DNA of 64,000 nt from Macrostomum lignano (taxonomy: Eukaryota): NCBI GenBank assembly GCA_002269645.1, contig NIVC01000185.1:27169-91168 (forward strand), read 5' to 3'. The number at the start of each line of letters is the position of its first letter. The stretch's first letter is position 1. The notes beneath the pieces are model-generated. The model saw nothing but the letters and a program-made list of their open reading frames with translations. It did not search any database and was not told the DNA's origin. Position numbers and translations under genes: made by a program. Shown piece after piece: positions 6,615 through 57,000 of this stretch.

Positions 6615-7250
6615 GTTAGATCAGTGGCATCATGGGTTAGATCAGTGACATATCAGTGGGTTAGATCAGTGACATATCAGTGGGTTAGATCAGTGACATA
6701 TCAGTGGGTTAGATCAGTGACATATCAGTGGGTTAGATCAGTGACATATCACTTGGGTTAGATCAGTGACATATCAGTGGGTTAGATCAGTGACACCAGT
6801 GGGTTAAATCAGTGACACCAGTGGGTTAGATCAGTGACATATCAGAGGGTTAGATCAGTGACATATCAGAGGGTTAGATCAGTGACATATCAGTGGGTTA
6901 GATCAGTGACATATCAGAGGGTTAGATCAGTGACATATCAGAGGGTTAGATCAGTGACATATCAGAGGGTTAGATCAGTGACATATCAGTGGGTTAGATC
7001 AGTGACATATCAGAGGGTTAGATCAGTGGCATATCAGAGGGTTAGATCAGTGACATATCAGAGGGTTAGATCAGTGACATATCAGAGGGTTAGATCAGTG
7101 ACATATCAGTGGGTTAGATCAGTGACATATCAGAGGGTTAGATCAGTGACATATCAGAGGGTTAGATCAGTGACATATCAGTGGGTTAGATCAGTGACAT
7201 ATCAGAGGGTTAGATCAGTGACATATCAGAGGGTTAGATAAGTGACATAA
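6615..7250. repeat. 24-bp minisatellite (GGGTTAGATCAGTGACATATCAG[T/A])
   Basis: Tandem copies; gives the 8-aa repeat ORFs (W/R)VRSVTYQ. Confidence 0.97.
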
Positions 7251-7690
7251 ATGCATTAGGTCAGTGTAAACTACCCACATGTATTTATAATGAACAACTA
7301 CATGTGGTGCCTAACAGAGTTTGGATACTGGAGCATTGTGATTCGGTAACTTCGGAATTATTGTATAAAAGATCCTTGAAGTTTATTAATATTAGAAAGT
7401 CCAGTAGGAGTGTCAACTATCAAAGAAGAACATGTATATTTGTATCCACTCAGGTAATGTTAAAATTCGTTTTGCGATTTGGTCGGTGTACAAGCGTACA
7501 AAATACATGTACACTAATAAGTATCAGAATAATAATAGTAAAAGGAAAACTGATATTAACTAATTTGATTAACTGTAGGGCTTAGCGATAGTTTTCTGTT
7601 AGCAGCGTTATAACAATATCCATGTGATGAAGGTTGAAACTGGCATGTAATTTTTAGATAGAAAAGTCACCAGAGCACTCAGTAAACCTC

Positions 7691-9343
7691 CTACTCAGCG
7701 CTGTCGTCGTTGACAGCCTCTTCCACTGCCTCGGGCGACCGAGGCTCAGCCTCAATCGGAGCCGTTGAGTTCTTCCGCGGCAGCAGGAAGGGCTTCAGCC
7801 GGCGGGCCCAGCGGCCCAGACTGCGGCGCTGGCTCTCGTCGACGGTGCTGCAGCCGACGGTGGTCCGGTTCAGGCCGTCCAGCAGGTCTGCCAGACTGCG
7901 CAGACGGCGGATCAGCCGACCACGGAAGCGACGTCCGCGGCGGCGACGCCACTCGGCGGCGGAGTCCGACATTGCAGTCGACTTGCTGCCGCTACCGCGG
8001 CGGCTTCTCCAGCTGGCGCGTCGAAAGAAGCTCAGGATGCGGCGCAAGCGACTCGACCTCACTCTGCGCTTCGGGCTGGCAGTCGGCTCTCGATCTGGGG
8101 CAGGACTCCGCTTGGTTTCGAGCTCCTCCGATTCCTTCAAATACAAAAAATACTAGAAATACAAAAAGGCGCTTCGATTGTGGAAATCTTTCATTTGCAG
8201 TAGTAACGTTTGTGCATTCTATGAGAGATTGACTACTGAAGAGTAGCAAGAAAAGAATTTCAAGCGAATCTCTTATAGGACACAAGTATAGCTCACAATT
8301 CCTATTTGTACATGATTTATTTGCCCAACAATCCGTTCGCCCTCTACTCAAACACGCATACGAGCTACGTACGGGCGCGTATTCGCTCTTCTCCAGCTCA
8401 TCGGGATTGTCGACGCTTTCAAGTTCGTTGGCGATCTCTTCTGTAGCTTCAGAATCCTCAACGGGAGCAGCTGGTGAGGCGGCCGAGTTACTCGGCTTCA
8501 CTCTCCGCTGCGGGCGGGCGGTCGGCTCTCGATCTGGAGCAGGACTCCGTTTGGCTTCGAGCTCCTCCGATTCCTTCAATAGAAACACAATAAGCGCTCC
8601 GATTGTGGAAATCTTGAAATTGCAATACTAATTCGTGTGTGTGCATTCTATCGAAATCAACTACTGAAGAGTAGCATGACAAGACTCTCTCATGAAAGCG
8701 AATCTCTTATTGTACATGTGGAGGCTCACAATTCATATTTGTACATGTATATAGCGTATTAAACACGCATACTTACGGGCGCGTACTCGCTCTCCTCCAG
8801 CTCATTGGGCTTATCGACGCTGCCAAGGTCGTTGCCGATCTCCTCCGTAGCTGCAGAGTCCTCAGCGGCAGCAGGTGAGGCGTCCAATATGCGTTGAAGG
8901 AATCGCCGGGTACGGCGCGATCGACTCGAACTCTCGATTCTGCGCTGCCGGCTGGCGGTCGGCTCTAGATCTGGAGCAGGACTCCGTTTGGTTTCGAGCT
9001 CCTCCTCCGATTCCTTCAATAGAAATCCAGAAGCGTCAACTTTGTTAGTTTTACAATTAGCTCGTAGTAAGTCACGTGTGTGCATTCTATAGGAGATTGG
9101 CTACTGAAGAAGAGTAGCAAGAAAAGAATACACAACATGTATTAGCGTATTTCCCTAAAAATAATTGCTTACGGGCGCGTACTCGCTCTTCTCCAGCTCG
9201 TCGGGATTGTCAACGCTTTCAAGATCGTTGGCGATCTCCTCCGTAGCTGCAGAGCCCTCAGCGTCAGCAGGTGAGGCGGCGAATGCGGAGGCGGCCGCCG
9301 CGAGGCCCAGCAAGAGGAGCGCAGTCAGCAGCAGAGGTTTCAT
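7691..9343 (-). CDS. Secreted multi-module prepropeptide (signal peptide, acidic spacers, Arg-rich cationic segments); candidate antimicrobial/effector peptide precursor, ~350 aa
   Basis: Four phase-0 exons: 9173-9343, 8777-9013, 8373-8573, 7691-8134. Donors are CCC|GTAAG or CCC|GTACG; acceptors are TTGAAG|GAA. N-terminus MKPLLLTALLLLGLAAAASAFA is a signal peptide. The repeated module is EEIANDLESVDNPDELEKSEYAP|ESEELETKR-SPAPDREPTA-(basic segment). Confidence 0.85.
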
Positions 9344-10424
9344 GTTTGCAAGAACAGATTTTAGACCTTAGGCTTATATGGAGATACTGGATTCTGTAAT
9401 AAGCTAATACTGACGCTGTCTTTATAGACGATGGAATATCCTAGATAAGGCCTCTCAAATCCGGGCTAAGAGTTGCAATGCCATATCCGCAGCGGCGCAG
9501 CACAGGGCCGTAAGGCAGTTTTGAATAGAATGAAAACAATGCAGAATAGAGACACTTCATGGATTCTCGAGACACAGCGAGTCCGCGTCTTTGCCAGGGA
9601 GAACTAAAACGAGAGTCTGGATAGAGTTTCTTGGATGCGTGGCTTGCAAAGCTATGCATAGTCTTTTGGTTGAAGATCTCCTTGGCTTTGCTCGCTAATA
9701 AACAGGTCTATAAATACATTTGCACTGCCGTGGTTAAAGTTTAACAACAATAAGAGCGGAGAATGATAAATCCGGATTTCAACAAAATTCAAAGGCAAAA
9801 CCTTTATAAAATATAGTTAATGGTAGGTAAAGATGTGAATTATATTTTATAACATTGCACAAATATGTCCAATTTTGTTCTTTCGCGCTCGAAAATACTA
9901 CTGAAGTTAGTCTATACGAAGAATTAGTATTGCAATTCATAGGAAATAGTAAATATATAGTAGTTCTGTGTAACATTATAGAGCATTGAATTGCAGGCAG
10001 TATCGAGGATTTGACCAGAACTTTATATACGAGTATAGCAAATCTAAAACTAGAAAAACGCACAACAAAGCAGGCAAGCGTGGATTTAATAAATACTTTG
10101 AAAAGTCTCGACATCTTGAACTAGATTTAAGCCTGATAAAGCCAGTTTAAGCCAGTTGACAGGTAAATATGGCGTCTCAATCATTAGTAAACTGAAAGCT
10201 ATATAAAACGAATTTGCACATGCAGCAGAGTATTGCGGTACAGGTGGGGACATGCAGAATGTTTGATGTCAAGGGTTTTTCAGACAAGGTTCTGAGATGT
10301 AGGAGAGAGCCAGTGGCGTACTCAGGGGGGGGGGCACCCCCCCCCCAATTGCCCATACATAAAAAAGGTGACTAAGCTCGACGAATGACAGGAGCTGACC
10401 AACTTTTGCCAAGGAGACAGGGCG

Positions 10425-22416: not shown

Positions 22417-23111
22417 TCAGTCATCATTGCTGAAAAACCGCTTGCCCATGCGGATGTAGCTCGCTCGTTTGTCGGCTTCATCAAAGGGACGTTTGCCCAT
22501 GCGGATGTAGCTTGCTCGCTTGCCCATGCGGATGTAGCTTGCTCGTTTGTCGGCTTCATCAAAGGGACGCTTGCCCATGCGGATGTAGCTCGCTCGCTTG
22601 TCGGCTTCATCAAAGGAACGTTTGCCCATGCGGATGTAGCTTGCTCGCTTGCCCATGCGGATGTAGCTTGCTCGTTTGTCGGCTTCATCAAAGGGACGCT
22701 TGCCCATGCGGATGTAGCTCGCTCGCTTGTCAGCTTCATCAAAGGGACGTTTGCCCATGCGGATGTAGCTTGCTCGCTTGCCCATGCGGATGTAGCTTGC
22801 TCGCTTGTCGGCTTCATCAAAGGGACGTTTGCCCATGCGGATGTAGCTCGCTCGCTTGTCGGCTTCATCAAAGGGACGTTTGCCCATGCGGATGTAGCTC
22901 GCTCGCTTGTCTACATCCTGATTCGATGGCTTGTCGCAGTTATCACAGGCGAAACCGAAGCCCACCAAGGATGCGGCAATTAGTAGGAGAATCTTAGCCA
23001 GCTTTACCTGAAAGTTAACGATAGGTATTTGCGATTGGAACCTAGCCGAGACCAAAAAAGTCCCTGGTCACTATGTCAAATCTTATTGCACGATTGCGAG
23101 TTTCTTACCAT
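22417..23111 (-). CDS. Neuropeptide precursor encoding 11 copies of ASYIRM-amide (197 aa)
   Basis: ATG at 23109-23111 is followed directly by the donor GTAAGA. The 101-nt intron ends TTTCAG, and exon 22417-23007 gives MVKLAKILLLIAASLVGFGFA (signal peptide). There follow 11x KR-ASYIRMG-KR (Gly amide donor, dibasic sites) with 7 acidic spacers (6 PFDEAD, 1 SFDEAD). Confidence 0.96.
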
Positions 23112-24294
23112 TTTTGAGAGCTTCTCGCTGCGCTTTCCACCAGGTTCACTGGAAGTCTTGACTCTACAGAGAGCTGTGTCTTAAAGTTCCTTCGGGTGGG
23201 GGAAGACTGACATGGTACGGATAACCCCTGTTTCTCCCCATCGCTTCCAGCCAATCAGCATGCGAGCCAAGAAGCCAATCAACCGCGAGTGAAAATCTGG
23301 CTGACACGCACTCAGGTACTCCTCATAGCATTCCTAGCAACATACCTGGGTTCCCCTACCACCAAAACAGCTGGTGAAAAATAACTAGCCAAGACTTTCT
23401 TTGGAGCAAATATCCGTATTTAGAAACACTCAGTCTAACTGCAGCTGCAGTTTGTCAGCTGCCACTCCAGCAGCTCCTCGGGTTTTGTTCTCATCAATTT
23501 CTTGCTGCAGCCTTGAGTCTTCTTAAACAAAAGACCCTCTCACTGTTTACCTGCTAGCTAGAGAAGAGAGACAAATGTCGCCAAGTTTAGAGACACTTGG
23601 AGTAGCGACAAAATTATCTCATTGCGAACAGAAAAAATTTGATGGGAAAGGCAAACTAAAAGACAAATTAGCTTGCCTTTCCCGCACAGCAGAGCAGGTC
23701 CAGGCTTGAGTCATTATTCTCATAATAAAACTTCTAAATAAGGTAGGAAACAAAAGCCAAAATTTTTGAGAGCCAAGAAAATTCATGCAGAAAAATAAAT
23801 TCGCTCTGAAAAGTTCTGCGAGAGAAAAGTTTCAGATTGAAGTTCTTCAACCGCAAGCCGATCTCCCTTTCTTCCCCTTTACTCCCCCCTTCATTCAAGC
23901 ACAAATCCATCTTCTATCGCCGTCTTCGGTATTTGGGCCAAAACTTGACAAGGCATGATGAATGCGGCTGCAAAACGCTGCGTGCCACCTCACTTCTGAG
24001 CGCTTTGCCCGAATATGCTGATCAAATTCTGAGCTTAGTCTCACTCTGCTGGCCTGGACGCTCCGATGAACTGGGCGCTTTAAGCGTGCGCCATATTTTT
24101 TAATTCAATACTAACGAAACCGCTAGTGAAGGAGTCGGAGTTTCACTCTTTAGTGCAGGCTCAGAACTGATCGGCTGTTGCAGGCAACAATAACAAAACT
24201 TGAATAAATTTTCCAATGCATTCTCCCGGCATACACAGTTGTGGCTGCAATAAATCATCAACGCAAATGATGCGATGTGAGCATCCCTCTTGCC

Positions 24295-25930
24295 AATCAG
24301 TCAGTCCCAACCAAGCATCCCTCAGTCCCAACCAAGCATCCCTCAGTCCCAACAAAGCATCCGTTAGTCCCAAACAATAATCCGTCAATCCCAAACAATA
24401 ACCTGTCAGTCCCAAACAATAATCCGTCAGTCCCAACAATCCGTCAGTCCCAAACAATAATCCGTCAGTCCCAACAATCCGTCAGTCCCAACCAAGCATC
24501 CGTCAGTCCCAACAATCCGTCAGTCCCAACAATCCGTCAGTCCCAACAATCCGTCAGTCCCAACAATCCGTCAGTCCCAACAATCCGTCAGTCCCAACAA
24601 TCCGTCAGTCCCAACAATCCGTCAGTCCCAACAATCCGTCAGTCCCAACAATCCGTCAGTCCCAACAATCCGTCAGTCCCAACAATCCGTCAGTCCCAAA
24701 TAAGCATCCGTCAGTTCAAACAAAGTATCCGGCAGTCCCAAACAATAATCCGTCAGTCCCAACCAAGCATCCGTCAGTACCAAACAACAATCCGTCAGTC
24801 CCAACCAAGCATCCGTCAGTCCCAAACAATAATCCGTCAGTCCCAACCAAGCATCCGTCAGTCCCAAACAATAATCCGTCAGTCCCAACCAAGCATCCGT
24901 CAGTCCCAACCAAGCATCCGTCAGTCCCAACCAAGCATCCGTCAGTCCCAACCAAGCATCCGTCAGTCCCAAAAAATAATCCGTCAGTCCCAACCAAGCC
25001 TCCGTCAGTCCCAAACAATAATCCGTCAGTCCCAACCAAGCATCCGTCAGTCCCAACCAAGCATCCGTCAGTCCCAAACAATAATCCGTCAGTCCCAACC
25101 AAGCATCCGTCAGTCCCAACAATCCGTCAGTCCCAACCAAGCATCCGTCAGTCCCAACAATCCGTCAGTCCCAACCAAGCATCCGTCAGTCCCAAACAAT
25201 AATCCGTCAGTCCCAACCAAGCATCCGTCAGTCCCAACAATCCGTCAGTCCCAAACAATAATCCGTCAGTCCCAAACAATAATCCGTCAGTCCCAACAAT
25301 CCGTCAGTCCCAAACAATAATCCGTCAGTCCCAACCAAGCATCCGTCAGTCGCAAACAATAATCCGTCAATCCCAAACAATAATCCGTCAGTCCCAACCA
25401 AGCATCCGTCAGTCCCAACCAAGCATCCGTCAGTCCCAAACAATAATCCGTCAGTCCCAACCAAGCATCCGTCAGTCCCAAACAATAATCCGTCAGTCCC
25501 AACCAAGAATCCGTCAGTCCCAAACAATAATCCGTCAGTCCCAACCAAGCATCCGTCAGTCCCAACAATCCGTCAGTCCCAACCAAGCATCCGTCAGTCC
25601 CAACAATCCGTCAGTCCCAACCAAGCATCCGTCAGTCCCAACCAAGCATCCGTCAGTCCCAACAATCCGTCAGTCCCAACAAAGCATCCGTCAGTCCCAA
25701 CAATCCGTCAGTCCCAAACAATAATCCGTCAGTCCCAACCAAGCATCCGTCAGTACCAACAAAGCATCCGGCAGTCCCAACAAAGCATCCGTCAGTCATA
25801 AACAAGCATCCGTCAGTACCAACAAAGCATCCGGCAGTCCCAACAAAGCATCCGTCAATCATAAACAAGCATCCGTCAGTACCAACAAAGCATCCGGCAG
25901 TCCCAACAAAGCATCCGTCAGTCATAAACA
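24295..25930. repeat. Large 17-21-bp minisatellite (ATCCGTCAGTCCCAA core)
   Basis: About 1.6 kb of interspersed unit variants (...CCAAGC, ...ACAATA, ...CA). Confidence 0.97.
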
Positions 25931-31221: not shown

Positions 31222-32471
31222 TTGGGTTGTTAGGAAAGTTCTGTCCGTTTTTTTATTTTTCTATGCAGAGGATCATGAAGCTGTGTTGGATCCAATACTT
31301 GTGTATGCATATACAGCCAGAGTTGTGGTCATTCTAACCAAGTCATTTGCTTTTCAGCGCCCAATTATGGCCAGATATTTTGAATTAAACAGCATCGCTC
31401 TAAGGCAGTGCATGCTATATGATTTTCTAGCAGGTATTACAGCAGCCGAATCGACTCGACGCCTGTGCAGTGCATTTGGCCAGGATGCTGTCTCTGACCG
31501 CACAGCCCGTCGTTGGTTTGATCGCTTTCGCAGCGGCGACTACAGCCTTGCTGACGAACCTCGCCCTGGACGCCCATCTGAGATAGACACTGAGCTGCTG
31601 CGGACACTTGTGGAGGCCAATCCGCACCAGACTACACGAGAGCTGGCAGCCACTCTTGGGTGCTCCCATGTGCAAGTCGCTGAACACCTGGCTGCCATGG
31701 GCAAGAAAAGCAAGCTCGGACAGTGGACCCCCATGACCTGACTGACAGGGACCGTCAAAGCCGAGCAGACATTTGCACCTCACTGCTCTCCTACAAGAGA
31801 ACAACAGACTGGCTGGCCTCAATACTCACTGGCGATGAGAAGTGGGTGATGTACGTTAATATACACCGCAAGTGCCAGTGGGTTGATGCCGGCAAACCGC
31901 CACAGCCAGAGCCAAAGGCCCCACTGCACCCTAAGAAGGTGATGCTCTGCTGTTGGTGGGACAGTGAAGGAGTTGTATACTTCGAGCTGCTGCCGCCCAA
32001 CACCAGCATCACCGCCGAGCTCTACTGTAACCAGCTGCAGAATGTGGCCGACTGCCTCCGCACACAGCGTCCAGGGCGTCAGCATGTTTGCTTCCTTCAT
32101 GACAACGCTCGGCCGCACACCGCCAATTTGACCCGACAAAAGCTGCTGGATCTGGGCTGGGAAGTGCTGCCCCACCCACCGTACAGCCCCGATCTGGCCC
32201 CTACAGACTACCATCTTTTTCGAGCGCTGCACCATCATCTGAAAGAGAAAACGTTTGAAGATGACAAAGGGGTCAAGGACTGCATTACTAACTTTTTTGA
32301 ATCACAGCCCAAGGATTTCTACAGAGCTGGCATCCAAAGTCTGCCCTCTCGTTGGCAGAGGGTCATCGATTGCGATGGCAATTATTTTACTGAGTAACAC
32401 TGCTGCATTCCTATAAAAACTCGCTCCAACATATTTTAGTCAAAACGGACAGAACTTTCCTAACAGCCCAA
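31222..32471 (+). mobile_element. Tc1/mariner DD34D (mariner) transposon, full length, 1250 bp
   Basis: TIR TTGGGTTGTTAGGAAAGTTCTGTCCGTTTT at 31222 and its reverse complement ending at 32471 (1 mismatch). Flanked by TA at 31220-31221 and 32472-32473. Confidence 0.96.
31367..32397 (+). pseudogene. Mariner transposase with a single frameshift
   Basis: Contains an HTH region, WTPHDL (WVPHEL-like), TGDEKW, HDNARPH and YSPDLAPTDY with 34 residues between the last two Asp. One C is missing in the C5 run at ~31728-31732, splitting ORFs 31283-31741 and 31723-32397. Confidence 0.93.
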
Positions 32472-35496: not shown

Positions 35497-36376
35497 ATGC
35501 CCCAGCAGCAGCATCAACAGCAGCACCTGCACCCTCACCTGCCGGCTCGCATCAAGTGCGTAGTGGTCGGCGACGGAGGCGCCGGCAAGACCTGCCTCCT
35601 GTCCTCTTACTCACGCGGAGTCTTCCCAACTGACTACATACCCACGGTGTTCGACAACTACGACGCAGCCGTGATGGTGTGCGGGGCCCAGGTGCATCTC
35701 AGCCTGTGGGACAGCGCCGGCCAAGAGGACTACGACAAGCTGCGGCCGCTGTCCTACCCAGAAACCGACGTCTTTCTCGTCTGCTTCAGCGTCGGCAACA
35801 AGCCGTCGTTTGCCAACGTGCTGGACAAATGGAGCCCCGAGCTGAGGCAGCACGCACCGCAGGCCCCACTGCTCCTAGTCGGCACCAAGGCCGACCTGCG
35901 CGATGACGCCGAGTTCACGGCGCACCTGGCGCTGCACAACGACTGCCCGATCGGGCGCGATGAGGCCGCCGATATGGCGCGCGAAATTGGCGCCGTCAAG
36001 TACATCGAGTGCTCGGCGCTCAAGGGGATCAACGTGTCGCTGGTAATTCGCATGGCAACTAATTGGTTTTTGCAAATCTGTTTTGAGACTAGCTCGTTTC
36101 ACACCGCCATCAAGTAAGGCCAAAGGGCCTGTCAACTTAAGCTCATAAAGTAGAGTCCCTAATTATCCTCTTGCTTGTTTTCCCCCATCCTAAGTCCGAT
36201 TCTCGTCAATTTTTTTGCTAAACCCTGCTTTCTGGTGTTTCTCAGAACCTCTTGTTTCACCAACAATCCAGGTGTTCGAGGAGGCGGTGAAGTCCGTGCT
36301 CTGGCCCGAGTGCAGCGCCAGTGGCAAGCGCACGACCAGCAAGAAGCACCGGAAGCGGTCGTGCGCACTTCAGTGA
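35497..36376 (+). CDS. Rho-family small GTPase (Rac/Cdc42-like), 216 aa
   Basis: Exon 35497-36042 has [50 protein letters not shown] and YIECSAL. Intron 36043-36271 (GT..AG). Exon 36272-36376 reads [10 protein letters not shown]...[11 protein letters not shown] (polybasic region plus CAAX). Confidence 0.95.
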
Positions 36377-36905: not shown

Positions 36906-37784
36906 ATCTCAGCGAAAGGTTCACAAACCATGAATGTGGGAATGATGACTCGCAACAGTGCAACTGAGTAAAAGCCTAATACTATTTTATCATAGCCTTT
37001 TTGAAGCCGCGCTTGCACGAGAGTCCAGGAATATTTACGGATAATATTTTAGCTTGAAAACCTTTTACGAAGCAAAACTCAAGAGAGGTTTTAACACACC
37101 CGGACCAGCCAATATGCCTATAATAGCTTTTTACTGCAGGCGTGCTGTACATAGCCGTAAACCTATCCCTTAATATTGGGATCAACCTGCAAGGAATCCT
37201 TAGAGCCTTTGACATTTTCGCTTTAATTCCAAAAGGAGCTTCCGCAAATGAAAGCCTTGTAAAATATTGATTTCTTATGCTTTTTTAGCTGTCACAATTA
37301 ATTATTTCAAACAAGCGCTTTTCACGCGCTTTGGCCCTGTCGTAAATATACCTGTTGTACCGTTCCCGGCGCAATAACTTCGGTGTAACATGGAAAATAT
37401 ATGAAATTCCTGCAATAATAAATGTTGCTAAATAGTCAGAAGTTAAATATGACCAGTGAACTTTCTTAATTTTTGAAGAAAAATTGTGAAATTAACTTTT
37501 CAGTGAAGTGAGGACAGCGACTTGAGCCTGAGCACCGAATTTCACCATGCAGTTTAAAATAAAAAAACGCAATGGGATTGAATTATCTCTTGCTGGCTAC
37601 TACAAGTAGAGGTCTTAGAAAAGTTTTGTAAATATATACATGGCAGAAAGAAATGCATATATTTTTTATATTTGTCTAAAATGCACAGATTAGATAAAGG
37701 TAGTCATGATTTAAGCAGGATGAGCAACTTTCCACGAGTCAATTATATAAGGTAGAAAACTGCAATCACATTGGCTTGAAATAT

Positions 37785-38365
37785 TGGTGCGCGCTTGTGT
37801 CATTATGGAGCTTTATGCGCGCTTGTGCCATTACGGAGCTTTATGCGCGCTTGTGTCATTACGGAGATTTATGCGCGCTTGTGCCATTATGGAGCTTTAT
37901 GCGCGCTTGTGTCATTACGGAGATTTATGCGCGCTTGTGCCATTATGGAGCTTTATGCGCGCTTGTGCCATTACGGAGCTTTATGCGCGCTTGTGTCATT
38001 ACGGAGATTTATGCGCGCTTGTGCCATTATGGAGCTTTATGCGCGCTTGTGTCATTACGGAGATTTATGCGCGCTTGTGCCATTATGGAGCTTTATGCGC
38101 GCTTGTGTCATTACGGAGATTTATGCGCGCTTGTGCCATTACGGAGATTTATGCGCGCTTGTGTCATTACGGAGATTTATGCGCGCTTGTGTCATTACGG
38201 AGATTTATGCGCGCTTGTGTCATTACGGAGATTTATGCGCGCTTGTGCTGTTACGGAGGTTTGTGCGCGCTTGTGCTGTTACGGAGCTTTATGCGCGCTT
38301 GTGCTGTTACGGAGGTTTATGCGCGCTTGTGCCATTATGGAGCTTTATGCGCGCTTGTGCCATTC
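37785..38365. repeat. 28-bp minisatellite (ATGCGCGCTTGTGCCATTACGGAGCTTT)
   Basis: About 20 copies starting just 3' of the ankyrin gene stop codon. Confidence 0.97.
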
Positions 38366-38376
38366 CGGCGCGCAGG

Positions 38377-39465
38377 TCACCACAAGTCGCAGTCGTCTCC
38401 AAAGTCTGTGAAGCCTTGCTCGCCAGGCAAATCGTTGCAGGCGAATTCGGCCTCACCGCCAGCCATCGAAGCCGACAGCTCACTCGGTCGCCGGGGCCCG
38501 TCCAGCTGCTCGCGCTGCTGCAACAGGGACGCCTCGGTCTCCAGGCCCAGCAGGCGCTGGTGCAGCTCCGAGTGTCCTCCGGCCAAGGCGCAGTCGGCCG
38601 GCAGGCGTCCGGACGAGTCCTGAGCCACCGGGCTGGCGCCGGCCGCCAGCAGCACCTCCGCCGTGTCCGAGTGGCCGAACAGCGCTGCCGCGTGGAGGCA
38701 GGCGCCGAAGTGGCCAGCTGGGAATGGCCGGCCGCCGCAATTCAGGATGGCGCGCACCGCCTCCGTGTGGCCGGCGCGGCAGGCGCGGAGCAGGGCGGCG
38801 CCAACGGCGGCCAAGTCGGCGGGGCTGGCTGCGCTAGAAAACTCTGGCGCCGCGGACAGCAGGGCGCGGCACAGGTCGGCGCTGCCTCGCTGAGCAGCAG
38901 CCGACAGCGGAGTGGCGCCATCTCGGCGCGCCAGTAGTGGCCTGGCGCCGGCCGCCAATAGGAGCTGCGCGCACTGGCGCCGGTCGTGCCAGCAGGCCAG
39001 CTGCAGCGCCGTGGCGCCATCAGCGCCGGCACCGCGCCAATCAACGGGCGCCCCAGCCGACAGCAGCAGCCGCAGGCAGTCGGCGTGGCCGTTCTGAGCG
39101 GCCGCCATCAGGGGGGAGCCGCCGAGCCGGCCGCTGACAGGCAGGCTGGGATCGGCGCCGTTGCTTAGCAACAACTCGGCCAGGTCGGCGCGGCCCGCCT
39201 GGCAGGCGTAGAAAAGCGCCGTGGCACCGCTTCGCCGGCGCTGATTGACGGGGGCGCCGCGGCGGAGCAGGTCGCGCGCGATGGCAGCGTCACCGGCAGC
39301 GGCGGCCAACATCAGCGGGCTGGTGCCCTCCGGGTCGGCGCAGGAAGCCCTGGCGCGCCCGGTGTCCAGCAGGAGGGCGACGCGGTCGCGGCGGCCAGCC
39401 AGGACGGCTGCTAGCAGCTGGCGGGATTGACGGTCAAAGCTGGACTGCGGCTCCATTGTTGCCAT
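38377..39465 (-). CDS. ANKRD29: Ankyrin-repeat protein, ANKRD29-like (single exon)
   Basis: About 8 ankyrin repeats. LLLDTGRARASCADPEGTSPLMLAA...GAPVNQRRRSGATALFYACQAG...GGSPLMAAAQNGH...DGATALQLA follows the ANKRD29 pattern as recalled; orthology was not tested. Confidence 0.8.
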   Translation of the reverse strand: MATMEPQSSFDRQSRQLLAAVLAGRRDRVALLLDTGRARASCADPEGTSPLMLAAAAGDAAIARDLLRRGAPVNQRRRSGATALFYACQAGRADLAELLLSNGADPSLPVSGRLGGSPLMAAAQNGHADCLRLLLSAGAPVDWRGAGADGATALQLACWHDRRQCAQLLLAAGARPLLARRDGATPLSAAAQRGSADLCRALLSAAPEFSSAASPADLAAVGAALLRACRAGHTEAVRAILNCGGRPFPAGHFGACLHAAALFGHSDTAEVLLAAGASPVAQDSSGRLPADCALAGGHSELHQRLLGLETEASLLQQREQLDGPRRPSELSASMAGGEAEFACNDLPGEQGFTDFGDDCDLW

Positions 39466-43570: not shown

Positions 43571-46500
43571 CTATAACGCACTGCTGCCCATGTCCTCATC
43601 CAGGCTCATGCCGTACTGCATACGGCGTCTCCGTCGGCTCATGAAGCCACTCTGAGCTCCAGATTGCTGCTCCTGCTGTTGCTGTTGTTGCTGCTGCTGC
43701 TCCTGTTGCTGGCCATTGACTGTTTCTGCTCGTCGATTTCGCCTGCCAGCTTCGCCGCCTTCTCCTGCTTGCGCTCGGCTGGGGCTGCCAGTGGGTAATT
43801 GGAAAAGTGATAATTGTGCGAAGCGGAGGGAGTGGCTGTGTTCAGTTCAGGGTCGGCAAGCTCGGGCCCGCGGGGCGCATGCTTCCTGCCAAGCCTCTCT
43901 AACCGGCCCTCGGGTCCTTTGAAACTTCACAATAGCAATCCGGCCCGCTCAAGGTTTGCGTCTCTTCTCTCCTCTCCTCTCCTCTCCTCTCGTCTCCTCT
44001 CCTCTCCTCTCCTCTCCTCTCGTCTCCTCTCCTCTCCTCTCCTCTCTCCTCTCCTCTCCTCTCCTCTCCTCTCCTCTCCTCTCCTCTCCTCTCCTCTCCT
44101 CTCCTCTCCTCTCCTCTCCTCTCCTCTCCTCTCCTCTCCTCTCCTCTCCTCTCTCTCTCCTCTCCTCTCCTCTCCTCTCCTCTCCTCTCCTCTCCTCTCC
44201 TCTCCTCTCCTCTCCTCTCCTCTCCTCTCCTCTCCTCTCCTCTCCTCTCCTCTCCTCTCCTCTCCTCTCCTCTCCTCTCCTCTCCTCTCCTCTCCTCTCC
44301 TCTCCTCTCCTCTCCTCTCCTCTCCTCTCCTCTCGTCTCCTCTCCTCTCCTCTCGTCTCCTCTCCTCTCCTCTCCTCTCCTCTCCTCTCCTCTCCTCTCC
44401 TCTCCTCTCCTCTCCTCTCCTCTCCTCTCCTCTCCTCTCCTCTCCTCTCCTCTCCTCTCCTCTCCTCTCCTCTCCTCTCCTCTCCTCTCCTCTCTCTCCT
44501 CTCCTCTCCTCTCCTCTCCTCTCCTCTCCTCTCCTCTCCTCTCCTCTCCTCTCCTCTCCTCTCCTCTCCTCTCCTCTCCTCTCCTCTCCTCTCCTCTCCT
44601 CTCCTCTCCTCTCCTCTCCTCTCCTTTCCTCTCCTCTCTCCTCTCCTCTCCTCTCCTCTCCTCTCCTCTCCTCTCCCCTCCTTTCCCCACTTCCCACTTT
44701 ACTACAGCTTGAATATTCAAGCAGTTCAACCTAATATTTTTAATTGTTGTGCTTCGAGTGGCCGAAAGATGACAGAGGCGCCCAAAAGTCTACCTAATAT
44801 TTAGCATCCCTCCTGCAATTTAGAACAGCCAGTCAGTAACCCTACCGAGTGGTGTTCACAGCCTTGTCCTCCATCTGCAGCTCCTCCGTGGCCGTCTGTT
44901 GATCCCGACCGCTGCGGTATTGAGCCTCGAACTCAGTTTGAGTCGATGCGGACTCCATCTGAGCAGCTGCTGGGCAACTCCCGGAGGAAAACTGGCCAAC
45001 ATCTCTGGTCGGGGTGAAGTCAACAGACTCGAGCAGGAACTCAACCGGTTCTGTTTGAGTCTCGGTGCTCTGCAGCTCAGGTTGCTCCTCCTGACCAACC
45101 GTGTCAATGCTGTTCAGGCTGGAGAAGCTGCGGGCGGGTTACGGGAGGTGGCGACTCGCCCTGGGACTATGCAGCTTGCAACCTGTGCACTAAAGTAATG
45201 GCTAAAGTAAAATCAGACAGTCACGGGGGCAATCAGCTCAAGCAAGTGACTCAACTGTTGGCATCTATTTCAGCATACCAGTTTGCTGTTTGGGCGTGAG
45301 TTTCATAGAATTGTCACCACTTTGACTGCATACTCGCTGTTACACGTCTCCTTTGAACGCTAAGTTCTTCCCACTTGTGTTGCGGTTGTGTTAGTGCACA
45401 TGCTCGGCAATAGCAGGCTGCAGTACATTACAAAGGCAAGGAAAATTTAGCAAGCAAGCGAGTGATAAGACAAAATTTCCACTTTTCTAATTATTTTTCT
45501 TTCGGAGTCAGTCAGGAGTACATTTGTGGTATCTTTTCTTTATTGAAGAATTCAGGAACTTGAAACTTTGGTCCAAGTTCCAAGTTGCAGATGAAGAGTT
45601 TGCTTTTGTTGCACATAACTGGCTATGCATCTCAAAACCAAAATCAAGGAAACTTTACCTTTCATTCCTGGAACGCCTGAAATTGCAGTTTGATTTCAAA
45701 GGTGGGAAAATATTTCGATAATACGGGTATATGTTTTTAAAAAGCTCAAGTTTTCCACAACCTGCAGTGCTTTGCTAAAAACAAAACTCTTAAGCGAAGC
45801 AGTAAGCACGGTTTCTCAAAGTACGAGTAGGAATTAGTGGCGGAACAAAAGTGATTATTTGCGTTCTTTAGCGACTAAAAATCTACTGAAACCATAGCCA
45901 AACAAATGTCAAGCAATGTACTTTAACTTTGGGTCACCAGAGTAACAGAGTTTTCGGGAAGACCATCAGCTCTAGCTACTATACTAGGACTAATTCGTTC
46001 CTGTGTTTATTTACAAAGAAAACCCTGTCAACTTCGTAAACCTGTCAGTTTAGCATCTGAATCCATCTTTAATTTAATTTTCAGCAGTTGCACAGTGCAA
46101 TCAAACTGTGGAGATTTTTCCACCGGATAAGACATAAAAACTTGTAAAGTTAGGTCAGGACGAGTCACTACAGCCGCTGACATCAGGAAAGATTCCCTTG
46201 ATTGGCAAACCGACTTGTTGTAATTATAATTTCTGAACAGCAAACCGAGAATCCTATAGGCTGTGGAACTGCAAAATAAGAAACCTTAAAGCTGCGGATC
46301 TGGATACGCTACTCATTCTAACACAGATCCCATAAGCTGCTCGTGTGCTGTTTGGTCACAACATGAGCTCATGTAAGACTGATGTACGTAAAATCAAAAT
46401 ATAATAATCAGGCATTTGTACCTGGAATTGGAGATAATGCAAGACCGAAATTTGCTAGCATTTGGCTTGTCCATGTCCTGTATGGAGCCCAGCTCGATGT

Positions 46501-47840
46501 GGCCAGGTAGGAAACGAATCTCCTTGCTCATGGTCTTGGGCAGGTCTATTTGCATGGCCATGGACAGGGAGGAAAGTTTATCCTGAACCTCGCGCTTCAG
46601 CAGCAGCAGCTCGATATCCTTGCCTTGCAGAACAATCTCAGTTAGAGCGCAGGTGCTCTTCAAGGTCTCCAGGGCCGACTGCAGTTCAGCCTTCCGACCG
46701 ATCACCTCCATGGTCTGCTTGCCGTACAGATTGTGCACCTCGTCAATCAGCTGCTTCTCTCGATTACGAATCTGTTGACGGAGTGAGGGAATCGATTGAG
46801 ACGGCAATGATTGGCTGGACTGGGACAGACTTTGAGGGGTTCTGCTAGGCATCACGTGACGAAAAATGAAGAGTTACTAAGCACTGATTGGCTGGCTTGG
46901 AATGCAAAGTCTATGGTTGGGTCTGTCATCACTTGTCGTTTGCTTCTATTGAATACAAGGAGTAAAAGTAGGTGGAGAAAATTCGCATCCTCATATGCAT
47001 TATTGCAACATTTACATTACAAGCTACTGATGAAAGGCAATGCAGCTTCAATGTCGAGTTAACACAAGCTCTTACATCAGCGACAAACTCGATCGCAAGC
47101 TCGCGAATTTTCTTCTCCGCCTCGGTGATCTGTCTCTCCGTGCTGTTCACTCGCTCCATGTACTTTTCGTAGACGCCAATCTTCGACTTGCAGTCAGCGA
47201 GCACAGCTTCAATGTCGGCCTTGTACTTGACCACCGCCTCGCTGAAGTTGGACACCTCGTGCTCTTTGTGCTCGTTGAAGGCGCAGATGATGCACACACA
47301 GGCTTGGCATGGCTCGCAGTAGAAGCGGACGACCTCATCCGGGTGGTCCTTGCAGATGATGTCCTTCTCTGTTTCGACGTCAAATATCGCATGGTCGCGT
47401 GTCACCTTTGTCTCCTTGTGCTGCTCAACGCAGGCCCGGCAGAGCAGCTTGTTGCAGTCCAGGCACTTGCTGCTGGCCTGCTCCTTGGCCCGCCGGCCGA
47501 CCATCTTGCAGATGTCGCAGCTGGCCGAACTCGTACCAGACTTCTGCTGCCTGTCCATCGTGTCGGACAGGTTGGAGATGAGGAAATTGTCCGGCAGCTT
47601 CTTGGCGCCGCCGACCGGCAGCTGAGTCCGCTTCCGGCACAGCGGACAGGTGAACTCTCGATAATCTGAGTACTTCTTGTAGGCCGCCTCGGAGGCGATA
47701 TGGTTCTCGATACAGACCTCGCAAAATGTGTGCAGACAGGACAGACACTTAGGCGTCTTGAACGGGCTCATGCAGATCTTGCAAACCAAAAATTCGTCGT
47801 GAATCTCCTGCACAAGCTTGCCGGCTTGAGTTGTTGCCAT
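43571..47840 (-). CDS. TRIM/RBCC E3 ligase: RING, two B-boxes, coiled coil, disordered tail (536 aa)
   Basis: Exons 47076-47840 (CKIC...CLHTFC..C...CPLC RING; CDIC...CLDC...C..C..QH B-box1; CKDH...YCEPC..CVC..C...EHKEH B-box2), 46422-46771 (coiled coil), 44846-45127 and 43571-43784. Phases 0, 2, 2 are consistent and all junctions are GT-AG. Confidence 0.9.
43965..44680. repeat. (CTCCT)n/(AGGAG)n pentanucleotide microsatellite in TRIM intron 3
   Basis: About 700 bp near-perfect polypyrimidine/polypurine tract. Confidence 0.99.
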
Positions 47841-51008: not shown

Positions 51009-54000
51009 GTGTCTGTCTGTGTGTCTGTCTGTCTGTCTGTCTGTCTTAGTGTCTGTCTGTCTGTCTTAGTGTCTGTCTGTCTGTCTTTCTGTCTGTCTGC
51101 TGAGTCCGTCAGTCCCTCACCCGCGGATGCCATCTGTAGCAGCTGTTCGGCCGCATGCGGAAGCGTGACTCCATGGTGCACACATCTGGCCCGGGGTCTT
51201 CGCGCGTCTCCCGTAGCAGCTCCGTGAAGTCCAGCCGGTCGTCGCCATCGGCTCCGTCGACTGGCTCCCTGGCCAGCAGCAATGCCGGATCGACGGCCGG
51301 AGACCGGCTGACGGCCACCAGCAGCAGGTTGGTGCCGTTGAGAAACAGCACCGTCACGCTGCGGCCCAGCGAGTCAACAGATTGGAAGGTTTCGCGACCC
51401 TGCGGCTCACTGCGGAGTTGATCAAAAAAATAAGCTGGCGGTGAATTCGCGAGACAACTGATTTACTTTCCTTCATTTCCCCGAATTCTTTTCTAACAGC
51501 TGATTATGAGTCTGAAAAGTTAAAACGAGCTGCATGCAAGTTGTAATATTTACTTTTTAGCTGATTTCTGTAGCTCTATATTTTAGGTACCTTCTTCTCT
51601 CCTCTTGATACAGAATAGGTCTAAAAATAGAATGTGCAGTTAGACTCTTATTCCGCGTCACCTTAATGTACTCCATCTCGAAATTTAGATAGTGCAGTTT
51701 CACCCATTTCGCGTCACTCTAATGTACGATCTACACTGTCTAAAAATAGAACTGTGCAGTCCCAAGCCATTTCACGTCAGTCTAATGTACACTGTGTCCA
51801 AAAATAGAACTGTGCAGTCCCACCCCATTTCTCGTCATTCTAATGTACACTGTGTCCAAAAATAGAACTGTGCAGTCCCACCCCATTTCTCGTCATTCTA
51901 ATGTACACTGTGTCCAAAAATAGAACTGTGCAGTCCCACCCCATTTCTCGTCATTCTAATGTACACTGTGTCCAAAAATAGAACTGTGCAGTCAACCCTA
52001 TTTCTCGTCATTCTAATGTACACTGTGTCCAAAAATAGAACTGTGCAGTCCCACCCTATTTCTCGTCATTCTAATGTACACTGTGTCCAAAAATAGAACT
52101 GTGCAGTCCCACCCCATTTCTCGTCGTTCTAATGTACAATGTGTCTAAAAATAGAATATTGCAGTCAAACCCTATTTCGCAACACTCTAATGTACACTGG
52201 ATGGAAAAATAGAACTGTAGGACACGTGCATTGGACCGTCCCCTTCCTGCTTTAACTATACCGAAGGAATCGCGATTACATACCCCTCTTCATGTACTTA
52301 TAAATTTGATTATGAATTTTCTAATTGTGTAACTTTTATACTTTATAGCATTGAAAAGATGATTTCAAGACTTTTATACCCTCTGAATGACGTGTACGAA
52401 TGATAACTTAAACATACCCTTGGAGATGCAATTCAAAAATGACAGCCTTAAACGGTAAAATCATGAACGAGAGGCATGCATGCATGCACAGGCAAGTTTT
52501 TGATGTCATGCACACTATAGTAATAATGTTTTTCTGCGTCTCAGAGTAGACTATAAATAATATTCCTATGCATGCAGTGACAATAATTCCAACTTGCATG
52601 AACTCTAAGTTCTCTACGTAAATTGTGGTGATTCATGCACTTACAATTAATTAATTACAAGTATTGATTAACTATTCGGTGTAACCAGCCCCTCAGTAGA
52701 GAGTTGGGGGGTTGTAGGTTACAAATTGAGTGACACACTGAGCCAGGAAACAAGCAATATTATAAGTACACGAGGTCCTGAAAAGGCACACCAATTTGTA
52801 CATTCCAACAGATGCCTTAACATTTGCATTCCGAGAGTACACGCGCACACTTACAGACACGTAAGCCGCCAATCCATGCGAATACTCGTAAAAGGCACTG
52901 GGAAATATCGCTACCCATTTGGTCATTTGAATTCGAATGCGATTCTGAATGAGAAAAATTCGTCACTATGATTACATAACAGTTTCTGTCTTCGCAACTT
53001 GTTTGAATCTCAATCTTCACTGCGACCGAACAGTGAAAGGCTAGATCTGTCTCATCTATCTCATCTATCTCATCTATCTTATCTGTCTCATCTATCTCAT
53101 CTGTCTCATCTGTCTCAGCTATCTCATCTGTCTTATCTATCTCAAATATTTCATCTATCTCATCTGTCTCATCTATCTCATCTATCTCATCTATCTCATC
53201 TATCTCATCTATCTCATCTGTCTCATCTATCTCAAATATTTCATCTATCTCATCTGTCTCATCTATCTCATCTATCTCATCTATCTCATCTATCTCATCT
53301 GTCTCATCTGTCTCATCTATCTCATCTGTCTCATCCATCTCATCTATCTCATCTGTCTCATCTGTCTCATCTGTCTCATCTATCTCATCTGTCTCATCTG
53401 TCTCATCTGTCTCATCTGTCTCATCTATCTCATCTATCTCATCCATCTCATCTATCTCATCTATCTCATCTGTCTCATCTATTTCATCTGTCTCATCTAT
53501 CTCATCTGTCTCATCTATCTCATCTGTCTCATCTGTCTCATCTATCTCATCTGTCTCATCCATCTCATCTATCTCATCTGTCTCATCTGTCTCATCTGTC
53601 TCATCCATCTCATCTATCTCATCTGTCTCATCTGTCTCATCTGTCTCATCTATCTCATCTGTCTCATCTACCTCATCCATCTCATCTATCTCATCCATCT
53701 CATCTATCTCGTCTATCTCGAATTTATCTCATCCATCTCATCTATCTCGAATTTATCTCATCTAACTAACAGATTCTACAATCGCAAACAAGCTGACCAA
53801 ATGGGCAAATGGGGAAATATTGTCAGCGTCAGGAAAAGCGAGCACGAGAAACGGCAGAGAGCACAGGGTCAGGCCTATCGGCAAGGGCACAGTTATAAAT
53901 ATTGATTATAGAGACTGGAAAGCTGGATAGCGTTATTAATAAGAGACAAAATATGGTGTTTTAAACAAAAAATTACACATATTTTAAGTATATTAGACTA

Positions 54001-57000
54001 AATTAACGAATTTGTACCTGCTAAAATGCCTGAAATGGAAGATTATCGAGAGAATGTTTGTTTAGTCCGTCAGGCGAGAGCTGTCGTGAAACAGAGCGTT
54101 ATCAAGTGTTTTAAAAAGCTTATTGTGTTAGTAATAATGGGTGACTGTAGTCAACGGAAGAGAAGTAAAGAGTTGCCCAAAATTCCAGTTATTAAAAGTA
54201 ATGCTTCAATCTGAAAGCAGACAATCTGCAAGTAGAGCACCAAAAAGAAATATTCACTTGCAAAGCAGATAAACTACCAATGTAAAAGAAGGAATTCCCG
54301 TTTAGATAACCGCTAAGGCTAACAAGGTCGCGAGAATTCCCTCTGGACAGAGACCAAACTACCAAAGCGAAGGGAATTCTCTCTAAGACAGCTATAAAAC
54401 CTACCAGGGCGAGGGGAATTCCTTCTTAGACAGCTATAAAACCCACCAGGGCGAGGGGAATTCCCTCTGACAGCCATTAAAACTACCAGGGCGAGGGGAA
54501 TTCCCTCTTAGACAGCCATCAAAACTACCAGGGCGAGGGGAATTCCCTCTTAGACAGCCATCAAATCTACCAGGGCGAGGGGAATTCTCTCTGACAGCTA
54601 TAAAACCTACCAGGGCGAGGGGAATTCCTTCTGACAGCCCTCAAAACTACCAGGGCGAGGGGAATTCCTTCTGACAGCAGAATGTGAGTGAAAAAAGGTC
54701 GCAACTTCGCCTGCATCTTTGAAAACAAGAAATAGACCATTAAGATTAAGGTAAATAGATTCAATTTTGCAAGAAGGCAATTAGTCTTTTCATGAGGCAA
54801 CGCAGCTATATGGCTTAATCTTGAACGTCACAGCAAAGCATTGAGCTAATTTGCTATTGATCAGCAATCTGAATCGATTGTTAAATCGCACTACTTACCG
54901 ATAGTAGCGATAGCCGAGTTTTATACAGCTATCGGGCTGCTGCGCCAGGGCGGAGTGGGCCAGCCACACCAGACCCGGGACAGTCAGCAGCTGGCGCTCC
55001 AGGCTATTGCCAGCCGTTGCTAGGCAACCGAGCGCCGCCGAGGCCAGGCCACCAGCTGCGACAGTCAATGACGCGGCTGAGTTCTTTGGCGGCTGCACCT
55101 TCCGTTTGATGCAACTACCCTGATAGTCGTATTCTTGCACGCTGAGGCGGTGGCGTGTGGCGGTGGTGTAACATTGGGGTGTAACATCGATGGGTAGCAT
55201 TGGTGGGTAGCATTGGTGGGTAGCATTGGTGGGTAGCATTGGTGGGTAGCATTGGTGGGTACCAGTGGTGGGTACCAGTGGTGGGTACCAGTGGTGGGTA
55301 GCATTGGTGGGTACCAGTGGTGGGTACCAGTGGTGGGTACCAGTGGTGGGTACCAGTGGTGGGTAGCAGTGGTGGGTAGCATTGGTGGGTACCAGTGGTG
55401 GGTACCAGTGGTGGGTAGCAGTGGTGGGTAGCAGTGGTGGGTACCAGTGGTGGGTACCAGTGGTGGGTAGCATTGGTGGGTACCAGTGGTGGGTAGCAGT
55501 GGTGGGTAGCATTGGTGGGTACCAGTGGTGGGTACCAGTGGTGGGTAGCAGTGGTGGGTAGCATTGGTGGGTACCAGTGGTGGGTACCAGTGGTGGGTAG
55601 CATTGGTGGGTACCAGTGGTGGGTACCAGTGGTGGGTAGCAGTGGTGGGTAGCAGTGGTGGGTACCAGTGGTGGGTAGCATTGGTGGGTACCAGTGGTGG
55701 GTACCAGTGGTGGGTAGTATGGTGGGTACCAGTGGTGGGTAGCAGTGGTGGGTAGCAGTTGAATAGGCTGTGCGTAGCCAGCCTACCATTGGCTCCCTAG
55801 AATGAATTCGTTGCACATTTTGTGCGCCACCTTCATTCAAACCAGGAGTCTATCTCACCTGCCGTAAACAGACAAATTGTATATCAGGTGTCGCATCAGG
55901 GGCTTGTCAACGTGTCCGAGAAAATGTCCGATCACCTGAGAGTGAGCAAATAAAACAAATAAAACAAAATTATGCTGATTAATTTAAGGTCTCGAAGTAA
56001 GTACTCGTACCTGAATGCTGAGAACTTGTTGTCTTTGATAGATTCAAAATTTAAATTTGGGCAGGAATTAGCTCGGACATGAAGATTGGGTCAGGCAAAA
56101 AGCAAATTTAAAATACATTCAGTGACAGCTGATACGCTATAGATGATATATGATAGGTGACAGGTGATTGATGACAGGTGATAGGTGACAGGTGATAGGT
56201 GACAGGTGACAGGTGATTGATGACAGGTGAATGGTGACAGGTGACAGGTGATTGATGACAGATGATTGATGACAGGTGATAGGTGACAGGTGATAGGTGA
56301 CAGGTGATAGGTGACAGGTGATAGGTGACAGGTGATAGGTGACAGGTGATAGGTGACAGGTGATAGGTGACAGGTGATAGGTGACAGGTGATAGGTGACA
56401 GGTGATAGGTGACAGGTGATAGGTGACAGGTGATAGGTGACAGGTGATAGGTGACAGGTGATAGGTGACAGGTGATAGGTGACAGGTGATAGGTGACAGG
56501 TGATAGGTGACAGGTGATAGGTGACAGGTGATAGGTGACAGGTGATAGGTGACAGGTGATAGGTGACAGGTGATAGGTGACAGGTGATAGGTGACAGGTG
56601 ATAGGTGACAGGTGATAGGTGACAGGTGATAGGTGACAGGTGACAGGTGACTGATGACAGGTGATTGATGACAGGTGATTAGTGACAGGTGATGGGTGAC
56701 AGGTGACAGTCGACAGGTGACAGGTGATTGATGACAGGTGATTGATGACAGGTGATTGGTGACAGGTGACAGGTGATTGATGACAGGTGAATGGTGACAG
56801 GTGACAGGTGATTGATGACAGATGATTGATGACAGGTGATAGGTGACAGGTGATAGGTGACAGGTGATAGGTGACAGGTGACAGGTGACAGGTGATTGAT
56901 GACAGGTGATTGATGACAGGTGATAGGTGACAGGTGACAGGTGACAGGTGATAGGTGACAGGTGATAGGTGACAGGTGATAGGTGACAGGTGATAGGTGA

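Follow-up and report, generated by a model that had tools for sequence, protein, structure and literature searches.

A Macrostomum lignano-restricted gene with tandemly repeated acidic and arginine-rich segments: a candidate charge-masked precursor of cationic effectors

In the dermaseptin-type precursors of amphibians the acidic propiece is conserved and the cationic peptide hypervariable, and the arminins of Hydra are taxon-restricted secreted precursors whose N-terminal part is anionic and whose C-terminal part is strongly cationic, Arg-rich and helical, with internal RR. In the apidaecin precursor and in promelittin a basic processing site, spacers of X-Pro and X-Ala dipeptides and a cationic peptide follow one another in tandem units. 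Granins can yield cationic antimicrobial fragments such as catestatin, and the acidic propiece of eosinophil pro-major basic protein (proMBP) neutralises an Arg-rich toxic protein in storage. Here we report a gene of the flatworm Macrostomum lignano, located at positions 7691-9343 on the minus strand of a 64,000-nt stretch of DNA (contig NIVC01000185.1 of assembly GCA_002269645.1, positions 27,169 to 91,168; hereafter the window), the product of which would by design be an acidic-propiece and cationic-peptide precursor in a novel form. We put the probability at about 40% that this product is a secreted, charge-masked pro-protein from which convertase cleavage frees Arg-rich effectors that bind membranes or polyanions, host defence being the likeliest role. 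Arminin 1a-C is documented as an active C-terminal peptide, and periculin as having anionic N-terminal and cationic C-terminal parts (PMC11767717).

The predicted protein starts with a putative signal peptide, MKPLLLTALLLLGLAAAASAFA (9278..9343, residues 1-22; all gene features are on the minus strand), which on inspection has an n-region MK, a 16-residue hydrophobic core and small residues at -3 and -1 (S-A-F-A). Residues 2-21 of this region form a predicted helix in AlphaFold, and the signal peptide proposed in a first-pass annotation of this DNA is thus supported. It is followed by three modules, each of which is composed of an acidic stretch of about 44 residues, KR, the linker SPAPD(L/R)EPTA(S/R), the sequence (R/P)(Q/K)RR and an Arg-rich segment. 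The acidic modules 1, 2 and 3 carry net charges of -14, -12 and -14, and both the KR at the module end and the next RR are invariant in all three. The Arg-rich segment has 22 residues and a charge of +8 after module 1, is a degenerate stretch of 8 residues after module 2, and has 26 residues and a charge of +12 after module 3; the values of +8 and +12 given in the first-pass annotation are correct. There are five Arg-rich segments in all, with charges from +4 to +12. Cationic segment 1, RQRRIESSSRSRRTRRFLQRIL (8885..8950, +8), is predicted to be helical in its C-terminal part (residues 87-101), and cationic segment 3, KRRVRSSRLRRILSFFRRASWRSRRG (7994..8071, +12), at residues 231-245. Two extra segments in the last exon are rich in Arg, Leu and Trp: segment 4, WRRRRGRRFRGRLIRRLRSLADLLDGL (7871..7951, +9), lies within the longest predicted helix (260-295), in which 10-residue block means of the predicted local distance difference test (pLDDT) score reach about 70, and segment 5, QRRSLGRWARRLKPFLLPRK (7772..7831, +8), has a predicted helix at 303-320. 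The protein ends in an acidic tail, NSTAPIEAEPRSPEAVEEAVNDDSAE (7694..7771, -7). It has a single Cys and two N-glycosylation sequons, and each module holds one Tyr in a sulfation-like acidic context (EYAPESEE) and one S-x-E motif.

Over the mature protein the charged fraction is 0.38 and the net charge per residue -0.03 (net charge -10, isoelectric point (pI) about 5.1), and the segregation of charges is far above chance (z = 7.9 vs 2000 shuffles). The AlphaFold model, which was run on the single sequence without an alignment and has a mean pLDDT of 53, predicts helices for the signal peptide and, over the cationic segments, for residues 87-101, 231-245, 260-295 and 303-320, besides two very short ones at 34-37 and 78-83, and leaves the bulk of the acidic modules as coil. 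The alternation of acidic and cationic parts described earlier is therefore upheld, with helices on the Arg-rich segments and coil in the acidic parts. From these predictions we infer a largely disordered, strongly charge-segregated pro-protein of the secretory pathway. When the cationic segments were checked for amphipathicity, the hydrophobic moments (0.5-0.7 over 18 residues) were above the shuffle mean in all four of the long segments, but each segment taken alone was marginal.

The locus is a real and intact gene restricted to M. lignano. It has four exons, with the ATG and the stop codon at the exact ends of the coding sequence; the coordinates 7691-9343 and all the sequence strings quoted in the first-pass annotation are present and match these ends. 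Splicing of the four exons produces an intact open reading frame (ORF) of 350 residues, and the three introns (159, 203 and 238 nt) all have intact GT..AG splice sites and are of phase 0. Exons and introns contrast in GC content (0.60-0.68 vs 0.35-0.37), and the codon usage of the gene resembles that of other coding ORFs in the window, with a GC content at third codon positions of 0.70, CGC as the favoured Arg codon and a like choice of Arg and Glu codons. Exon 1 (9173..9343, 57 codons) runs from the start codon through the signal peptide to halfway along acidic module 1 and ends in EKSEYAP at a junction which is identical in the UniProt model A0A1I8JF40. After intron 1 (9014..9172; GTAAGC..TTGAAG, GC 0.35), exon 2 (8777..9013, 79 codons) leads from ESEEELETKR through the linker SPAPDLEPTAS and cationic segment 1 into the first half of acidic module 2. 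For intron 2 (8574..8776) the model A0A1I8JF40 has another acceptor, which lies 39 nt upstream, makes the exon start at 8612 and adds ISTIGALIVFLLK; exon 3 as modelled here (8373..8573, 67 codons) consists of ESEELEAKR, SPAPDREPTAR, PQRRVKP as the degenerate remnant of a cationic segment, and half of acidic module 3, namely its first. Intron 3 (8135..8372; GTACGT..TTGAAG) is spliced identically in the UniProt models A0A1I8H1N8 and A0A1I8JF40, and exon 4 (7691..8134, 147 codons and the stop) continues with ESEELETKR, SPAPDREPTASP, three Arg-rich segments and the acidic tail. The splice junctions chosen in the UniProt gene models are otherwise those of our four-exon model. On the plus strand two ORFs overlap these exons (7710-8156 and 7765-8232); neither start-codon context nor splice structure was seen for them, and they were dismissed as antisense artefacts that arise from GC-rich coding sequence.

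At the genomic level the gene contains a tandem triplication with a unit of about 400-440 bp including an intron. The three repeat units (8051..9284) are spaced by 396-440 bp, and each comprises the end of an exon, an intron and the start of the next exon. The exon duplication proposed earlier is thus correct in that exon-intron units are tandemly repeated, but the introns do not separate the modules: they lie inside the acidic module, between EYAP and ESEE. Between intragenic copies the ratio of nonsynonymous to synonymous divergence (dN/dS) of the acidic module and linker is 0.18-0.63 at a dS of 0.15-0.35, and is below 1 in all three comparisons, which argues that the acidic module is kept by selection and that this selection is purifying. 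The aligned intron parts diverge by 0.21-0.56 (Jukes-Cantor), similar to or above dS, and gaps in the aligned exon parts of the units are of 3 nt and in frame, whereas those in the introns are of arbitrary length. The length of the cationic segments varies (22, 8 and at least 26 residues), and only their first ten or so residues (RR-V/I-x-SS-R..RR) can be aligned. A constant acidic part joined to a length-variable cationic part would fit the evolutionary pattern of antimicrobial peptide (AMP) and toxin precursors. As a separate observation on the introns, a short hairpin, GCTACT-CTTC(TTC)-AGTAG(C/T), is kept in all three of them (9100-9118, 8661-8675 and 8233-8247), and the 15-mer does not occur elsewhere in the window. 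The folding energy is exceptional for the copy in intron 1 (z = -5.95) and not for the other two, there is no Rfam match in 7300-9600, and about 12 nt 3' of the hairpin is ATAGAATGCACA, a stretch which looks more conserved than the remaining intron.

An exhaustive HMMER (phmmer) search of 1.84 billion representative proteins returned three matches, two of them UniRef entries of M. lignano and the third a locust protein. The entry A0A1I8H1N8 (227 residues) is 100% identical over residues 136-350 and A0A1I8F4J0 is 92% identical, while A0A1I8JF40 (363 residues), from the same 90% cluster, has an intact ORF and differs by one substitution and by the 13 extra residues that result from the other intron 2 acceptor. 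These entries identify the DNA of the window as that of M. lignano, and so of a flatworm. No relatives outside M. lignano were found among these representatives apart from the locust protein, a 'mucin-2-like' match (E 3.4e-4) which was set aside because it is driven by composition and repeats, with no more than 13 identities in 32 positions in its best pairwise segment. In Pfam no family was significant, the best being SLX9 (E 0.28) and BNIP2 (E 2.6) with nothing else up to E 10, there was no sequence match in the PDB, and tblastn of the protein against the window detected no second copy outside 7691-9343. The first-pass statement that the protein belongs to no named family agrees with all of these searches. 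That it is undescribed holds for its function but not for the gene model, since the predicted proteins A0A1I8JF40, A0A1I8H1N8 and A0A1I8F4J0 are already in UniProt; by these comparisons the model is public under a wrong name, without a functional description, and belongs to no known family by homology.

It should be noted that all three of these UniProt entries are named 'Retinitis pigmentosa 1-like 1'. RP1 and RP1L1 are doublecortin-domain proteins associated with ciliary microtubules. The name itself is the sole support for taking the product as an RP1L1 homologue, a reading to which we give practically no credence: no significant Pfam family was found and nothing related to RP1L1 was listed, no RP1L1 protein was among the HMMER matches, and the predicted signal peptide would be incompatible with a ciliary microtubule-associated protein. 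As far as sequence can decide, the Pfam and HMMER results refute this homology. The label most likely stems from a compositional match to the Glu-rich repeats of RP1L1. A search for it in the Macrostomum literature gave no match. Whether the protein is a precursor of effectors or a gland polyampholyte, the name is wrong and should not spread further.

With preprodermaseptin the product shares a predicted signal peptide, an acidic propiece ending in KR and a variable, cationic, amphipathic helical segment, which is a resemblance of design and not membership. Neither signal peptide nor propiece showed sequence similarity to preprodermaseptin in the phmmer search, and the present gene has three propiece modules, to which a Pro/Ala linker and a further multibasic site are added, with its introns inside the propiece and with a cargo that is Arg-rich and full of RR sites, unlike the Lys-rich cargo of dermaseptins. 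The arminins are matched in taxonomic restriction, in the (here predicted) secretion and in the pairing of an acidic part with an Arg-rich helical part with internal RR. No homology to them exists and no cnidarian protein was among the HMMER matches; arminins have one acidic and one cationic region where here a module is repeated, and their activity has been shown experimentally whereas the present gene is known from its sequence. The order of basic site, X-Pro/X-Ala spacer and cationic segment in tandem, to which the first-pass annotation had drawn attention, recalls apidaecin and promelittin. In contrast to apidaecin, in which the peptides of the units are near-identical, the cationic parts here differ in length as given above; unlike in both precursors, the dipeptide run is broken after two dipeptides by D-R or D-L, and the acidic module is of about 45 residues and not of a few dipeptides. 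Granins and proMBP, which belong to the regulated secretory pathway, are likewise acidic and disordered with many dibasic sites (here pI 5.1 and 20 pairs), but the protein has no granin or C-type-lectin domain and no similarity to them, and differs in size and repeat structure. Classical flatworm neuropeptide precursors, one of which, the ASYIRMG-KR gene, is present in the same window, also have a signal peptide, KR sites and acidic spacers. In that gene one short peptide with Gly as amide donor is repeated identically 11 times, with spacers of 6 residues, unlike the long acidic modules and non-identical cationic parts of the present product, which has no amidation signal.

According to the precursor model, the three acidic modules (-12 to -14 each) and the tail (-7) would, after removal of the signal peptide, mask the five Arg-rich segments electrostatically, so that the stored precursor would be near neutral (net -10). 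Subtilisin-like proprotein convertases would then cut at the invariant Lys-Arg which ends each acidic module, and a second time at (R/P)(Q/K)RR after the 11-residue Pro/Ala linker. These cuts would part mask from cargo and free Arg-rich amphipathic helical peptides, chiefly from exons 2 and 4, which would act extracellularly on membranes or polyanions, most probably in antimicrobial host defence. The first-pass annotation had instead proposed an X-Pro/X-Ala spacer trimmed stepwise by a dipeptidyl aminopeptidase. The spacers read SP-AP-DR/DL-EP-TA-SP/SR/RP, and four to five of the six dipeptides in each fit the proposed periodicity (hypergeometric P 0.04-0.12, the three copies not being independent), but the run is broken in all three copies at the third dipeptide, D-R or in module 1 D-L, which lacks Pro or Ala at its second position. 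The trimming does not survive this, because a dipeptidyl aminopeptidase would stall after SP-AP.

Several observations weigh against the release of effectors from a masked precursor. The proposed mature peptides contain every one of the seven furin-type sites (R-X-[KR]-R) and the majority of the 20 dibasic pairs, which also weakens the earlier claim that several linear peptides are released. An enzyme that cuts ETKR/S would be expected to cut also at RSRR/T, RTRR/F, RLRR/I, RRRR/G and the other such sites, and the peptides might be shredded; because these convertase-type sites are internal, the sequence does not reveal how large the products would be. Internal RR is also found in arminin, tachyplesin and the protegrins, and by this analogy internal basic sites would not exclude the precursor model. 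Module 2 has almost no cationic cargo, and it is the acidic module that is conserved among the repeats, whereas in classical multi-copy peptide precursors conservation marks the product and not the spacer. In the entry A0A1I8F4J0 parts of the cationic region are translated in other frames, the C-terminus is likewise out of frame, and cationic segment 3 is missing; this entry may be a decayed paralogue or reflect indel errors in an older long-read assembly. To these are added the low confidence of the AlphaFold model and the marginal amphipathicity of the single segments (P 0.03-0.25 vs shuffles).

The many internal multibasic sites would be easier to accept if the protein never met a convertase and were secreted largely intact, as a polyampholyte with a structural or other function in a gland secretion (prostate seminal fluid, adhesive or releasing gland, rhabdite or mucus, cement gland). 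In such a protein the acidic and Arg-rich blocks would drive complex coacervation in granules and, after release, binding to charged surfaces. The strong charge blocks with their high segregation and near-zero net charge per residue, the predominance of disorder in the AlphaFold model, the single Cys with two N-glycosylation sequons, and the lineage-restricted and repetitive nature of the gene would all suit it. Many prostate-limited transcripts of M. lignano are likewise orphan and encode signal peptides: 31 of 76 gave no BLAST hit, and a signal peptide was present in 38 of the 65 proteins that were translated (PMC5977470). On the other side, as a weak test, the terms 'retinitis', 'RP1L1' and 'pigmentosa' are absent from the supplements of the same seminal-fluid screen, including its Blast2GO table (PMC5977470). 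The invariance of KR and RR at the module boundaries speaks against an intact polyampholyte, and the small gene lacks the Tyr/DOPA-, Lys- or Gly-rich signatures that would be expected of adhesive or eggshell proteins. We regard this explanation as possible, though on the unlikely side; if it holds, the gene would be one more fast-evolving gland protein of modest interest.

Cleavage at the boundaries is retained if the product is instead a granin-like prohormone of dense-core granules, with the Arg-rich stretches serving as processing and sorting regions. Its products would be either three acidic peptides, each about 42 residues long, or SPAPD(R/L)EPTA(S/R), which is present in three copies between KR and RR. 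The predicted signal peptide, the pI of 5.1 and the 20 dibasic pairs would be in keeping with this, as would the Tyr and S-x-E motifs of each module and the fact that the conserved part is the acidic module with its linker; dibasic processing of flatworm neuropeptide precursors has been reviewed (PMC9042389). The three linker copies lack a Gly donor, and their conservation does not exceed that of the acidic module. The protein has neither a Gly for amidation nor a short, identical repeated peptide, no granin or neuropeptide family was matched in Pfam, the ASYIRMG-KR precursor 13 kb away looks quite different, and long helix-prone Arg/Leu/Trp segments would not be needed as spacers, all of which makes a granin-like prohormone improbable. 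Smaller still is the probability of a young orphan or decaying gene without selected function, whose ORF persists merely as the internal duplication is recent. The lack of homologues outside M. lignano, the frame-shifted A0A1I8F4J0 copy and the low-complexity composition would be expected of such a gene; the dN/dS values below 1 in each module comparison at a dS of up to 0.35, the in-frame gaps in the aligned exon parts, the intact splice sites of all three introns, the ORF kept open both in the window and in A0A1I8JF40, and a codon bias like that of neighbouring genes speak against it.

The flanks of the gene contain a TATA-like box, CTATAAAG (9420..9427, 83 nt 5' of the ATG), and an AATAAA polyadenylation signal (7382..7387, 303 nt 3' of the stop), both on the minus strand and both candidates by pattern match. 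The gene is bracketed by two minisatellite arrays with 95% matching units, at 6615-7249 (24-bp unit, 26.7 copies) and from 10412 to beyond 11000 (23-bp unit, at least 25.9 copies). The region is repeat-rich, and the long ORFs at 24277-25320, 37776-38400, 43814-44804, 52817-53769 and 54895-57186, in which several frames are open on either strand, seem to be tandem minisatellites read as protein, and are not genes. The neuropeptide precursor gene is located at 22417-23111 on the minus strand, with its ATG (23111-23109) directly before a GT donor and exon 2 starting at 23007. It encodes 197 residues with the signal peptide MVKLAKILLLIAASLVGFGFA, 11 copies of ASYIRMG flanked by KR, and PFDEAD spacers. 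The predicted product, ASYIRM-amide, is akin to the YIRFamide peptides of flatworms but has Met at its end; ASYIRM, YIRMamide or YIRMG did not occur as a peptide in the literature searched. Further features, recognised by eye, are two overlapping ORFs of 152 and 224 residues at 31283-32397 (plus strand) which look like the N- and C-terminal halves of a transposase of the mariner/Tc1 type, separated by a frameshift, and probable gene fragments of a Rho-family small GTPase exon (35497-36117, plus strand), an ankyrin-repeat protein (38377-39465, minus strand) and a RING/B-box (TRIM-like) protein (46929-47840, minus strand). Silaffin-like RRIL motifs had raised the question of contamination from diatom food. 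This origin was rejected because the window carries metazoan-type genes, judged by eye, namely the amidated neuropeptide precursor, the RING/B-box protein and the mariner transposase.

Free-living flatworms are models of regeneration and stem-cell biology that live in microbe-rich sediment, and their peptide effectors are almost uncharted. RNA interference by soaking and transgenesis are established in M. lignano. A literature search found no described Macrostomum AMP, and a 2019 review on the AMPs of worms deals only with annelids and nematodes and leaves flatworms unmentioned (PMC6780910). More doubtful than the precursor model itself, yet worth stating, is the idea that this Macrostomum-restricted orphan may be the founding member of a family of linear, Arg-rich, cationic peptides for host defence, which would be the first such family to be described from a free-living flatworm. 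The gene would have grown by tandem duplication of an exon-intron unit, each unit with a conserved acidic mask and a fast-diverging cationic cargo, and its design would converge independently with that of amphibian and Hydra AMP precursors. If antimicrobial or membrane-active peptides are indeed released, the gene would provide M. lignano with a testable humoral effector, and it would be a clean case of an orphan gene building a charge-masked multi-peptide precursor through the duplication of exon-intron units.

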